From Pavona decussata (taxonomy: Eukaryota), in assembly GCA_977016875.1 (NCBI GenBank), contig CDRNST010000144.1, positions 6,696,001-6,760,000 on the forward strand: DNA of 64,000 bases. Reading direction: 5' to 3'. Below, in pieces: positions 31,969-45,994 of the stretch. The position numbers and the translations under genes are program-made. The stretch's first letter is position 1. Every line of letters starts with the position of its first letter. The notes beneath the pieces were generated by a model. The model searched no databases. It was given only the letters and a program-made list of their open reading frames with translations, and was not told where the DNA came from.

Positions 31969-32057
31969 ATGAGGGTACGGCGAAGAGCCCGCCAAGTTCC
32001 CCTGGTGTTAATTGCGATGATTCTCTCATCCTTCTTCCAGGCTGGACAAAGTGTATG
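31969..32057 (+). CDS. WNT5: Wnt5 coding exon 1 (signal peptide)
   Basis: ATG at 31969 gives MRVRRRARQVPLVLIAMILSSFFQAGQSV(W): basic N-region plus hydrophobic core. It ends at TG|GTGAGT, a phase-2 donor that completes a Trp codon with exon 2, matching the W-S-L start of mature Wnt5. Confidence 0.8.
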
Positions 32058-32458
32058 GTGAGTTTGAACGTATTGCTGTGGCAGTTGCACCCACGTTGTT
32101 TGTGTTATGGTTTTCCGTCTTAGATGATTCTGTTTTTGTCTTGGTCAAAAGCATCTGGAAGAAATGTACTAGTTCCGTTGAAATTAGGTGTTAGCGTGAT
32201 GTTTACTTGCAAGAAAACTTGCATGTGTCATTAGTGCTATTTCACCAAGGGACATGTCTTTGGTAGTAAAACGCCACGGTGACGGAATGCTGTCGAATTA
32301 ACTAAGATTTCAAATCATGGCTTGTTTTTGCTTCGCTTTAGTCGGCTTTCTCGTCGGTTTCTCAAAGCCTTAATGGTTTTATAATTCCTTCAATGGCGAT
32401 TACTTGCAAATTACTTAACCAAACATCCCGCTCTTGTTCTTGTTTTCAATTCAAACAG

Positions 32459-32700
32459 GTCGCTCAGTATTCCACATCAAGTGTACATTATTGGGACAGT
32501 CTCACAGTTTTGCAATGGAATGGACTTGACTCCCAAACAGACGCAAATGTGCGAGGAAAACCGAGGTCTTATGGCCAGCATTAGATATGGGGCTAATCTT
32601 GCAGTGAAGCAATGCCAGTACCAGTTTCAGTATCGTCGATGGAATTGCTCTGTCCCAGAGAAGGACAGTAATACTCTTTTTCGTCGCATAACTGGAAAAG
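32459..32700 (+). CDS. WNT5: Wnt5 coding exon 2
   Basis: Acceptor ttcaattcaaacAG (32457-32458). Encodes WSLSIPHQVYIIGTVSQFC...KQCQYQFQYRRWNCS...ITGK; VYIIG and CQYQF..RRWNCS are Wnt5-typical. Phase-1 donor G|GTGGGC. Confidence 0.92.
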
Positions 32701-41808: not shown

Positions 41809-44800
41809 GAAGATGCCATGTTCCGGCCTCACTCGAGAACAAGTTGCTTCCTCAATGTAGCGTCATGGTATCGTTCAACTTTGAGGACGCGTGTTTTGAT
41901 TAAAATCGACCAATCAAGGACATGGATCAATAAAAGCATCACTCTTTAATAACTGTGGTGATAACGAGAAACACATCTTTTAAGTTGACCAAGATAACTC
42001 AAGACGATATAGTGGATAGCAAAATCCTTCTCTTTTGACTTGGCCAAAGAAGACCTTACACGCACTATTATTGTCAATATTCAGATAATGGCAATGTTTC
42101 TACTGCTTATGTGTGAATTTATTTTAACTGGATAATAGATACTGTTTAAAGACTTTGACTAGACTGTACTGTTCTTAACCCACGTGTATATTTTGTAGTT
42201 ATTTCTAGCATATTCGAATTTCGACATAAACAAGAGTCTTTTCTCCTCAACACCTCTTTCCGCACATGTCCATAACATAAATAAATGACCATCAGAAAAC
42301 TGTTAGGGAAACCAAACAAAACTGATCGGAGGGGGGGGGGGGGGGAGACCCTGCAATGTACTAGCATCCCTTCCTGGGAGACAAAGTAATACTCTTATTT
42401 GCTTCCGGTACCTGAGTTACACCTTTAAGTAACCTGTAAGATCTTGGAATGGTGCCCAAAATTTAAGTTCTTGGATGAATCGTTACGTCATCCATTTGAA
42501 ATGTAGCGAAGATCTTTTAAGGAGTGGTACTATTTGGTTTTCAATTTTTCCCAAATTTTTTTTTTGGCACTCTTAGCCGCCTAAGATAGAATTACCTTGT
42601 TCATTAAGTATACCTCAGTCTCATTTAATTAGGAAGATTATGAGCTTCTATTGAGTGAGATTGGTGTTTGTGTTGGTCAGTTGTTAAAAAAAAAAAAAAA
42701 AGTAGCGGCCAGGGCAACTCCTCTTGTTCTGCCATTGGGCAGTATAGCTAATTTTGGGACGTGAAAATAAGTTTTATACGGAATTTCAATGACTAAAAGC
42801 GTATATTTCCTACATCTTCGATTGTCGTTTATGTTGTAGAACAGGGTTTATATTGTTATTATGCACAGACAGTATCCGATTGATTGGGATGCATTGTTAT
42901 GTATAAGTCAATAACGCATATAAATTATTACGTATCTACGCACATTTTTCGCCCCAAAAAATGTAGCTAAATTGAAATTTTGAGCACAACATATATGGAC
43001 GTTACTTGACTGGTAATGCTACAGAAACGTAATACGTTTTTCCCCCACCAACTTCAGATGAATAACTCACCGAAATTTCAACTTGTTGTAAGGGTTTTTC
43101 TTTCAAGTAAGTGTACATATTTCTAGTCTCTAACATTAGAAAATTTTATCGGTACAGCTAGATTCCTAATCTCAGACTTTACGTCTGTCAAATATTATGC
43201 ACAAAGTGGATTAGAGAAATCTGACTTGGTATGTGGAGCAACTTGCCAATACCTCGCTGTTTGTCAGCAAATAAATCTCGTATTTTTATGTTTAATTTTT
43301 TTTGCTCATTTGCACATTATTTGGTCGTTGGACACAGACGTTTGAATTTCGGTTAATAATATCCAATGACCTCGTGTTCGACCCTATTAAGGATAACCTT
43401 TCATCAAGATTTATTGACGGGAACTTTTATATACGTATGACCCGTTTTTGGCACATCATGGTTTAACACAAAAATAATGCTATGTAACCAACTTTTTAGC
43501 ACAAAAGCTAAAAACATGCCTTACAATGCCACGGTTTGGTTACAAGCACGCATGAAAGGTTATTTAGAGGTCCATCTATTTGCGAACTGCTTACCCATCG
43601 TTGTCTGAATTATGCAATTTGTAGCTTGAGTAGAGCATGCAATCAAACTTTATCATGAGGAAGTACGGATTAGCCTATAGCCTTTACGTTTTCAATTATT
43701 TTGAGCGATAGTCGGGCCAGGCGTACTTAGTCTTAAAACTTCCGAACACTTGTGTTAGGTGCCAAAGTTCACTAACGAAAGTTCGATTTTTTAATGATTT
43801 GCAAGGGAAAAGCGTTGAAAATTTTGAAAGATTTAAAGGCATATTGGGTTAGTTTGCACGAAAAAACTACCACCAACCAATAGAAACGATAAAAAATATT
43901 CGGCGCCTAAAACAAATCGGGAGTTTTGAGTAATGGACCCCTGAGCTACGGTAATTTTTAGGCAAATATTTTATCTATAATTAAATGTACTTACCCTTAT
44001 ATTTTATTCTAAACTTTATGTTTTTCAGTAAAAATAAAGGTTAACGGTTTGTCTGTTAATAAAAACCAGCAAGCTTAAACAAAATATGAGCCATGGGTAT
44101 AGTCTTCTGAAATTTACCAAACGATTCTTTTAAACAATATTACTATTCGTGACATCGTATAAACACAACGTTAAACCTACCATAAGGAATCAACTTCAAT
44201 TTTCCTTATCTCGCCATACAGATTGTGCATTACCGGGCACGTTTTTTTAGTTAAAACGCTATCTGGCATATAAGATCGATGGATTTCAAGGTTTGAAGTT
44301 GACTGATGCCCGCGTTATAGGCATATTATTCACTCATATAAAAGTTATAGCAGACAGAGGCGTCCATGTGAACACAGACAGATAAGCCGCACTCACTGAC
44401 TAGCAGCAACCGGGGTTAAGAAGCTTGAATTTTGGAAAAAAATTCACATTCGAGTCAGAAGAACTGTCCTATTTTCGATGAACGTGGAGGCAAATCTCCA
44501 CACAGATCAATAGTTCAAACCAGATGAAATAATAAATGTAGTTTTAGATGCAGTTTTAGTCTTCAGCGTTCTTGGGAACAAAATGGCGAACCCAAAAGAA
44601 CTTTCCTATCAGCATCTTTTCATTTACTTTAGTTTTTCGATGGCAGTTACTCATTAGCAAAAGTAGCAGACCCGAAAATCAGGCTTATCGTGTTTTACTA
44701 TTTAACATTCATGCTAAGCTAAGTAACTGGGCGGGAGAGAGAGAACTGGAGATAAGTAATTTACGTCCTCTACAGCAGAGAAATAACAGTGCGATATTGT

Positions 44801-45481
44801 TTGCTCGTGGAGGAATCGATAACTATAAAAAGTTGATCTGGAATTCCTTCAAATTTTGGCACTTCTCTTCAATTTACCCAACTTTCAGCCGTAGCTTTTA
44901 TTTGAGTCACACAGCTTGCGAATATTTTCGTTTTACCTTTTAAAATTCTCATTAGATGACCTTTAGCTGTTTCAGAAAAGGCGATACTTAATCCCTTAGA
45001 AGATCTGTTGACAAAGGTGATTAATGATATTGCTAAAACGGCTTGTTTTAGGAGCCCTCAAACTTGATAAAGTAGTGACTAGTTCAGTCTTATTCTATTA
45101 TGGTGTCACATTGTAATTACAGTTGCTAAAATGGACTTTGTGTTAGTCTTAACATGTTTAGTTCACCGAACCTCATCCCGATATTCTCGCAGATAAACCT
45201 TACCCAAATTTCATGCAAATGTTCGGGATTTGTACGGGTACCTTCAACGCTGGCTGTTCTCCATCAACTTCCTGGTCCCTTTGTGTTTTTTTCTTGTTAC
45301 TTAGACGGCTTAAACAAATTTTAACGATGACAAGAACACGACCAATGTTTGTAAACCCGAACCAATAGAACTCCATCTGGTGTAGCTAAGGGCAGAATCT
45401 GCTTGGGGGTGTGTCATCTAGACTATTCAATATCTTCAGTCGACGATAGCTGAATCATTCATTAATATTTTTTATCAACAG

Positions 45482-45994
45482 GTTACCAAAGAGCAAGCCA
45501 AAATTGTGTGCAAATGCCATGGCATGTCAGGATCGTGTAACATGAGAACGTGCCAAAGGGAATTGTCCGAATTCCGTGTGGTCGGCGACATCTTGCACAG
45601 AAAATACGACAACGCCGTACGTGTGAGATTGGAGAGGAAAGACGCCTTGAACAGTCTCCATATTGTAAAGAGAAAAAAGAACGGTGAATACCGTCGGGAC
45701 AGTTCGAAATTGAGAAGCACCAACAAAAAGCCAGCGATCGACACCATGGTGTTCTTAAAAGACTCGCCTGACTACTGTGACGGAGGTCCGAAGCGTGAAT
45801 TTCCAGGAACTTATGGGCGAGTCTGTAGCGGTGACTCGTACGGTTCAGACAGCTGCGATGAGTTATGCTGCGGGCGCGGATACCGAGAAGTGCAGGTGTT
45901 GACCAGGAAGCGATGCAAATGTAAATTCCATTGGTGCTGTGAGATCAGATGCAAGGAATGCTCAAAACTGGAAACTAAGTACACATGCCGGTGA
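45482..45994 (+). CDS. WNT5: Second Wnt terminal exon 4B (170 aa; putative alternative last exon of Wnt5, isoform B 376 aa)
   Basis: Acceptor atattttttatcaacAG (45480-45481), phase 0. VTKEQAKIVCKCHGMSGSCNMRTCQ...KYD...SPDYC...GTYGRVC...CKFHWCCEIRC...TKYTCR*. All 16 cysteines present, no stops or frameshifts. No separate 5' Wnt exons were seen between 41808 and 45482. Confidence 0.85.
   Translation, partial: VTKEQAKIVCKCHGMSGSCNMRTCQRELSEFRVVGDILHRKYDNAVRVRLERKDALNSLHIVKRKKNGEYRRDSSKLRSTNKKPAIDTMVFLKDSPDYCDGGPKREFPGTYGRVCSGDSYGSDSCDELCCGRGYREVQVLTRKRCKCKFHWCCEIRCKECSKLETKYTCR

Follow-up and report, generated by a model that had tools for sequence, protein, structure and literature searches.

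Can one Wnt gene supply two different ligands by exchanging the half of the protein that contacts the receptor? The question is raised by a stretch of 64,000 nucleotides from the coral Pavona decussata (assembly GCA_977016875.1, 602 Mb; contig CDRNST010000144.1, here C144, positions 6696001-6760000). We call the whole of this stretch the window and count positions from its first letter unless C144 is named. It carries a Wnt5 gene whose three common coding exons are followed by two further exons, 4A and 4B, each encoding a complete C-terminal half of a Wnt protein. An earlier interpretation made from the DNA letters alone (the sequence-only reading) had proposed that these are alternative last exons of a single gene. 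We are confident that this is so, and that stony corals have one Wnt5 gene in which exons 1-3 are joined to either 4A or 4B, giving two Wnt5 proteins. What carries this view is the presence of both junctions in RNA-derived contigs, the conservation of the arrangement as pairs of RefSeq isoforms, the age of the duplication as told by two old clades of tails, and purifying selection on both exons. The diversity of Wnt ligands is usually put down to duplication of whole genes. Here one promoter appears to lead to two proteins.

What would the two proteins have in common? The P. decussata locus was searched exon by exon, and natural full-length orthologues from the databases were used wherever joined proteins were needed. 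The coordinates are collected in the table. Exons 1-3 add up to 89+242+287 = 618 nucleotides, or 206 codons, and exon 3 ends in ...GGAATTCAG/gtgaga, a CAG/gtgaga donor in phase 0 (the slash marks the exon boundary); the length and the phase-0 donor at 35768 had both been read correctly from the letters. Exon 3 is 78% identical to its counterpart in Desmophyllum. The orthologous N-terminal half of other corals is 68-79% identical to exon 3 and finds its best non-cnidarian matches in Wnt-5a and Wnt-5b across animals, and the best match of both tails, 4A and 4B, among solved structures (PDB) is Wnt-5a. Exons 2, 3, 4A and 4B together span the Pfam wnt profile (PF00110), all of them far above the cut-off.

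Table. Coding exons and 3' untranslated regions (3'UTRs) of Wnt5, and exons of the convergent Wnt7 gene next to it.
Feature	Window position	Position on C144	Strand	Remarks
Wnt5 coding exon 1	31969-32057		+	ATG to donor; 89 nt; signal peptide MRVRRRARQVPLVLIAMILSSFFQAGQSVW; donor at 32058
Wnt5 exon 2	32459-32700		+	242 nt; Pfam wnt positions 4-57; 89% identity to Desmophyllum pertusum Wnt-5b
Wnt5 exon 3	35482-35768		+	Last common exon; 287 nt; Pfam wnt positions 58-150
Wnt5 exon 4A, coding part	41302-41808		+	Alternative last exon; 168 aa + stop; Pfam wnt positions 153-304, E 1e-48; A-type tail with canonical TCW
4A 3'UTR	41809-44084		+	About 2.3 kb; AATAAA at 44033 and 44058; contig ends at 44078-44084
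Wnt5 exon 4B, coding part	45482-45994		+	Alternative last exon; 170 aa + stop; Pfam wnt positions 154-305, E 6e-51; B-type tail with TCQ for TCW
4B 3'UTR	45995-46751		+	Minimum extent; X1 contig of 1296 nt spans 45479-46751
Wnt7 distal C-terminal exon	60613-61092	6756613-6757092	-	Intact; also delimited as 60610-61092
Wnt7 proximal C-terminal exon	64061-64588	6760061-6760588	-	Just past the window
Wnt7 exon 3		6767322-6767609	-	Past the window; Pfam scan
Wnt7 exon 2		6768968-6769132	-	Past the window; Pfam scan

And what would differ? Each of the two last exons has an open frame with no internal stop, its own stop codon and 16 cysteines. Both begin in phase 0 behind a pyrimidine-rich AG acceptor (...tttctcatgtttag/GTTATT for 4A and ...ttttttatcaacag/GTTACC for 4B). 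The acceptors, cysteines and stop codons had been listed in the sequence-only reading and are all there in the sequence. Its estimate by eye of about 40-45% identity between the two tails was also good, the amino-acid comparison giving 43.8%. The thumb motif C-K-C-H-G-x-S is present in both, as CKCHGVSQSC in 4A and CKCHGMSGSC in 4B.

Two such exons in a row do not by themselves make one gene. Wnt genes often lie in tandem, several of the about 24 Wnt loci of this genome do, and 4B might belong to a separate Wnt paralogue with missed 5' exons, located between 41809 and 45481 or elsewhere. If so, a second N-terminal part should lie ahead of 4B. A six-frame Pfam scan of the whole genome found, at this locus, a single match to each of exons 2 and 3, both upstream of the two last exons, and none between 4A and 4B, and permissive tblastn found no Wnt N-terminal similarity between the two exons; both searches agree with the earlier statement that no second set of exons 1-3 lies there.

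More direct evidence comes from Logan contigs of four runs (X1, X5, X8 and X13), which derive from four studies of P. decussata and were placed on window positions 41100-46900. Contigs that start at 41300 (X1, X5 and X13, and also record 21 of X8) carry an overhang of 24-25 nucleotides, (C)TACATAACAATGATGTGGGAATTC, and contigs that start at 45479 (X1, X5 and X8) are preceded by TACATAACAATGATGTGGGAATT. The overhanging letters match the last part of exon 3 (window 35743-35766). Since AG or CAG is common to the end of exon 3 and to each acceptor, the junctions are 35768>41302 and 35768>45482, exactly those that had been predicted. Each junction was found in three runs from different studies; the two occur together in X1 and X5, and X8 apparently carries both if record 21 is counted. 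Run X13 displays the A form only, and contigs of this kind cannot prove absence. Hence one donor, that of exon 3, is joined in RNA contigs to two terminal exons.

The overhang could mislead if the end of exon 3 had copies elsewhere. With the common AG or CAG it measures 26 nucleotides, and this 26-mer of exon 3 is found a single time in the window and nowhere else in the 602-Mb genome. That the contigs break at 26 nucleotides follows from the use of a 31-mer graph: exons 4A and 4B share their first four bases, GTTA, and the first word to separate the two paths contains 26 nucleotides of exon 3. Such a break reflects the presence of both isoforms in one sample (X1, X5 and, by record 21, X8). 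The contigs of the four runs have no joint from 4A to 4B and no joint of any kind inside 41100-46900, and positions 44204-45367 are nearly uncovered, with just sparse contigs of low depth. Therefore no hidden exon feeds 4B. Against a separate paralogue stand, then, the direct joining of the unique end of exon 3 to 45482, the lack of Wnt N-terminal matches and of contig joints between 4A and 4B, and the full-length orthologues in other corals (below) that pair a Wnt5 N-terminal half with a B-type tail. We consider that explanation extremely improbable.

Where would the two messages end? A contig of 2816 nucleotides from X5 spans 41300-44078, and contigs from X1 extend to 44084, with coverage falling beyond. 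The contigs of the 4A message stop just 3' of AATAAA. Behind 4B, further contigs carry coverage to at least 46900, and the next AATAAA signals lie at 47104-47236; contigs as such cannot display poly(A) tails.

Is the arrangement peculiar to one coral? Used as a query, 4B reached genomic exon open reading frames only, since the length window of that query shut out full-length proteins, and full-length isoforms were reached with a longer database frame, P0009, limited to its tail region. The representative library contained no close full-length relative of 4B, which is uninformative because A and B isoforms fall in one 50% cluster. The exon frames orthologous to 4B are intact in many other assemblies, are 58-84% identical to it and all start at the same acceptor position. 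Full-length coral proteins join a Wnt5 N-terminal half orthologous to exons 1-3 to a B-type tail at ...NNEVGIQ/V. Some of the full-length B-type proteins are encoded on contigs of transcript size (1.3-1.9 kb): the Logan contigs with complete B-type frames are P0175 (1776 nt), P0177 (1694 nt) and P0302 (1335 nt). The A-type protein P0180 is likewise listed from Logan.

A look-up of the clusters showed that RefSeq assigns A- and B-type tails to a single gene, as isoforms, in eight species: Pocillopora damicornis, P. verrucosa, Stylophora pistillata, Acropora digitifera, A. millepora, Montipora foliosa, M. capricornis and Porites lutea. Pairwise comparison of isoforms X1 and X2 in Pocillopora damicornis (XP_027056895/XP_027056896), S. 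pistillata (XP_022781124/XP_022781126) and A. digitifera (XP_015760763/XP_015760766) gives 100% identity up to ...NNEVGIQ and about 45% thereafter, the part beyond the switch point being a B- or an A-type tail. These Gnomon models thus describe the orthologous gene, with the same two tails, the same N-terminal halves and a switch at the same place. They differ from an analysis of the arrangement in being automatic and inconsistently named, either Wnt-5a-like or Wnt-5b-like. Expression studies and orthology tables of corals that list Wnt-5a-like and Wnt-5b-like as separate genes are actually counting isoforms of one.

The same comparisons bear on an error of assembly, by which the 5' part of a second gene was deleted or an exon was duplicated. 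Such an error is a general possibility for any locus and has nothing more in its favour here. A related, independent assembly (L003) has the identical exon order 3-4A-4B, both types of tail are RefSeq isoforms of one gene in several coral genera, the window contains no N, runs of DNA size hold 86-99% of the stretch's words, and the RNA junctions agree with the assembly. The chance that the arrangement is an artefact of this kind is next to nil.

How old is the pair of exons? We built a maximum-likelihood tree of 31 C-terminal halves with the Wnt7 tails as the outgroup (support is given as bootstrap/Shimodaira-Hasegawa-like approximate likelihood-ratio test). The coral A tails form a clade (97/91), as do the coral B tails (100/99); A and B are sisters (97/92), and the anemone Wnt5 tails stand outside A+B within cnidarian Wnt5 (97/94). 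The branch that splits the whole Wnt5 set, bilaterians included, from the Wnt7 tails has 91/92 and is the chosen root itself. Acropora, Montipora, Porites, Pocillopora and Stylophora are represented in each of the A and B clades and Oculina is found in both; Orbicella and Desmophyllum entered the tree for B only. We take the sampled genera to span the two major lineages of stony corals, complex and robust. In Actinia and Exaiptasia no second C-terminal exon was found within the Wnt5 gene and 10 kb downstream of it, and each has a single one. Two clades in corals and one exon in anemones mean that the duplication postdates the separation from sea anemones and predates the divergence of the living stony corals.

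Duplicated exons can persist for a while without being used. One of the two could be a leftover of a partial duplication, now in decay, whose splicing is functionless noise. Exon 4A would be the candidate: compared with L003 its amino-acid identity is 71% against 83% for 4B, and its ratio of nonsynonymous to synonymous substitutions (dN/dS) is 0.21 against 0.13, with 0.06 for exon 3 and dS of 0.7-0.8. The A-type model of A. palmata has a deviant end (...CCKVSYCQK), and the Orbicella and Oculina RefSeq isoforms that were seen are all B-type. However, both ratios are a long way under 1, and the non-coding DNA around the exons has diverged past detection, the stretch between them having no detectable similarity to L003. 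Both exons keep open frames, 16 cysteines and the motif of the acylated serine, the A and B tails of other genera are free of stops, both exon types form deep clades across complex and robust corals, and both are found in transcript assemblies. A relic is therefore very unlikely. The substitution ratios indicate that both tails are under purifying selection, which is somewhat weaker on 4A. The earlier suggestion of an old exon duplication kept by selection is borne out, two of the checks it had called for (a phylogeny at the level of exons and dN/dS) having given two well-supported sister clades of coral tails and ratios far below 1 in both exons.

A further alternative concerns the number of products. 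A donor inside 4A might join a truncated 4A to 4B, which would give a third protein with C-terminal halves in tandem. This form is found in RefSeq isoforms X1 and X2 of A. palmata (546 and 531 residues; P0333 and P0335) and in the non-RefSeq GenBank models of Oculina patagonica, Pocillopora meandrina and Porites lobata (P0179, P0308 and P0342). In the tandem models 4A is cut at ...CKF.WCCK and 4B follows, and the resulting Wnts have 531-577 residues. At least three of them are non-RefSeq, though, gene predictors often chain exons that are in frame, and the four P. decussata runs have no joint from 4A to 4B. We know of no precedent for a protein that carries the thumb and cysteine-knot half twice. 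A third product of this kind is unlikely.

Several points weigh against two alternative last exons, or at least against a simple version of them. The RNA label of the runs is only a guess, and their RNA nature would follow from the junctions: these lack the introns, and therefore the runs should derive from spliced RNA. Contigs supply neither full-length molecules nor relative abundance nor strict mutual exclusivity, and rare forms are dropped from them. Contig coverage does not reach the 3' end of the 4B isoform. The models with A and B in tandem may reflect a read-through product in other corals. Finally, the B-only RefSeq sets of Orbicella and Oculina imply that use of the A exon may vary among species. 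None of this changes our preference for one Wnt5 gene with alternative last exons.

The mechanism is most likely as follows. The message begins with the three common exons (206 codons). Then either exon 3 is spliced to 4A, with cleavage and polyadenylation near 44080, or the acceptor of 4A and the poly(A) site behind it go unused and 4B, 4.2 kb further, is joined to exon 3 instead. Each last exon supplies a thumb hairpin with the acylation motif (CKCHG-x-S), a linker, a cysteine-knot C-terminal domain and its own stop. By exon arithmetic the predicted products have 374 and 376 residues, with the same N-terminal half and a different receptor-contacting half. A tandem exon duplication in the coral lineage created the two last exons, and purifying selection has retained both.

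What might the choice be for? The serine of the Wnt thumb is acylated. A Wnt touches Frizzled and co-receptors with its thumb, its linker and its C-terminal finger, and the two tails differ in these parts. The TCW motif after the thumb is kept in every A-type, anemone and bilaterian Wnt5 tail that was compared; in B-type tails its tryptophan is replaced by Q, M, L or S (10 of 10). B-type tails also have a strongly conserved basic linker (KRKKNGEYRRD..KLRSTNKKP), about 20 residues longer than that of vertebrate Wnt-5a. Both proteins would be secreted ligands and would differ in their choice of receptor or co-receptor. The sequence-only reading had spoken of two ligands from one promoter with different receptor binding. 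Its first half now rests on both junctions in RNA; its second half is to be taken as a prediction from the tails. One may speculate further that the B tail makes a ligand of switched function specific to stony corals, using another set of receptors or co-receptors than A or acting as a competitor. This is a tentative suggestion, and we would sooner bet against it than for it. If it were true, corals would tune non-canonical Wnt signalling by splice choice and not by a second gene, and the adjacent Wnt5 and Wnt7 genes would have arrived at such a solution independently. Whatever the function is, the A/B pair is a natural domain swap retained since before the living stony corals diverged, and it lends itself to finding out whether the N- or the C-terminal half of a Wnt decides on the receptor.

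We know other examples that resemble this gene in part. The isoforms of human WNT5A have alternative first exons and are known to differ at the N-terminus only; the receptor-contacting thumb, linker and C-terminal domain are equal. A long and a short isoform from the one human gene are dealt with in PMC3832467. Whole-gene paralogues such as vertebrate WNT5A and WNT5B, or the Wnt loci that lie in tandem in this genome, share with the coral gene the course of duplication followed by divergence. They differ from it in that only the last exon was duplicated in the coral, the promoter, the signal peptide and the N-terminal domain remaining single and the choice of tail presumably falling to splicing coupled to polyadenylation.

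The closest known system is in the gene next door. In the sea anemones Nematostella vectensis and Edwardsiella lineata, Wnt7A and Wnt7B have exons 1b, 2 and 3 in common and alternative 3' exons, as drawn in Fig. 11 of PMC3909931. That article reports and extends the account of Sullivan et al. 2007, and the variants are found also in a bioRxiv preprint (10.1101/2024.10.02.616324). The likeness is considerable: common 5' exons, alternative 3' exons that each code for a full C-terminal half, and preservation of the arrangement between species. Moreover, Wnt7 lies right next to Wnt5, in convergent orientation, within a conserved Wnt5-Wnt7 cluster. The gene studied here is Wnt5 and not Wnt7, and thus is not a Wnt7A/7B-type locus, alike as the mechanism is. 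The difference is that of another gene and an independent duplication, for inside cnidarian Wnt5 no tails are closer to A than B or to B than A; judged from the tree of tails, the Wnt5 exon duplication is independent of that of Wnt7. Its absence from the two anemone loci makes it the younger of the two. In addition, the Nematostella 7B tail is spread over two exons, whereas the coral Wnt5 tails occupy one exon each.

How new, then, is the coral arrangement? The sequence-only reading had regarded it as not described for Wnt5. No paper describing or analysing alternative tails of coral Wnt5 was found in the literature searched, and to this extent the statement stands. What it missed is that the architecture itself is published for cnidarian Wnt7A/7B (PMC3909931). 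The coral Wnt5 arrangement is real and conserved; it is not a new principle. The independent duplications in Wnt5 and Wnt7 suggest that anthozoans have repeatedly diversified their Wnts by copying the last exon.

The Wnt7 neighbour in P. decussata was observed to be the coral counterpart of anemone Wnt7A/7B, with single copies of exons 2 and 3 and two intact tails (loci L001 and L002). The best match of these tails among solved structures is Wnt-7a, with E values of 3e-42 and, for the distal one, 1e-56. Exaiptasia has Wnt5 and Wnt7 tail to tail as well, with two Wnt7 tails on the minus strand (L005, 23723-23259 and 19939-19457). On the other side of Wnt5, upstream of it, lies a single-exon open reading frame of 407 residues of the F-box/leucine-rich repeat (FBXL) type (window 23209-24429, minus strand), and an FBXL neighbour was also called at the Wnt5 loci of Actinia and Exaiptasia (L004 and L005). 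With FBXL found beside Wnt5 in all three, the order FBXL-Wnt5-Wnt7 is conserved between the coral and the anemones.

Elsewhere in the genome, tandem groups of Wnt loci lie on C28, C93, C274, C436 and C145, and, with few exceptions, the remaining ~22 Wnt loci have one C-terminal exon per gene. At one locus on C436 a surplus degenerate fragment full of stops lies between exon 3 and the last exon (C436:1785665-1786054), and at least one Wnt locus, C274:1141067-1142222, contains stop codons.

A few smaller observations concern the two ends of the Wnt5 gene. The N-termini of orthologous coral Wnt5 proteins align at exon 1, which probably starts at an acceptor near 31951, upstream of the ATG. Window 31948-31968 codes in frame for TLFDFV ahead of this ATG and behind an acceptor-like gtgcag. 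The peptide resembles FLDFA and FIDFV, which stand before the same methionine in those RefSeq isoforms of other corals that are extended at the N-terminus. A tblastn search for an upstream coding exon for such an extension found only this in-frame TLFDFV, and P. decussata may have an upstream coding exon and an N-terminally extended Wnt5 isoform. In A. palmata, the end of the A-type isoform X4 quoted above hints at a frameshift or an assembly error in the A exon. Long trinucleotide runs, translating as poly-T/poly-Q, poly-N and poly-I, occupy 34830-34900, 47030-47110 and 48180-48240, in an intron and 3' of the gene; the one near 47050-47110 lies within or just past the 4B 3'UTR.

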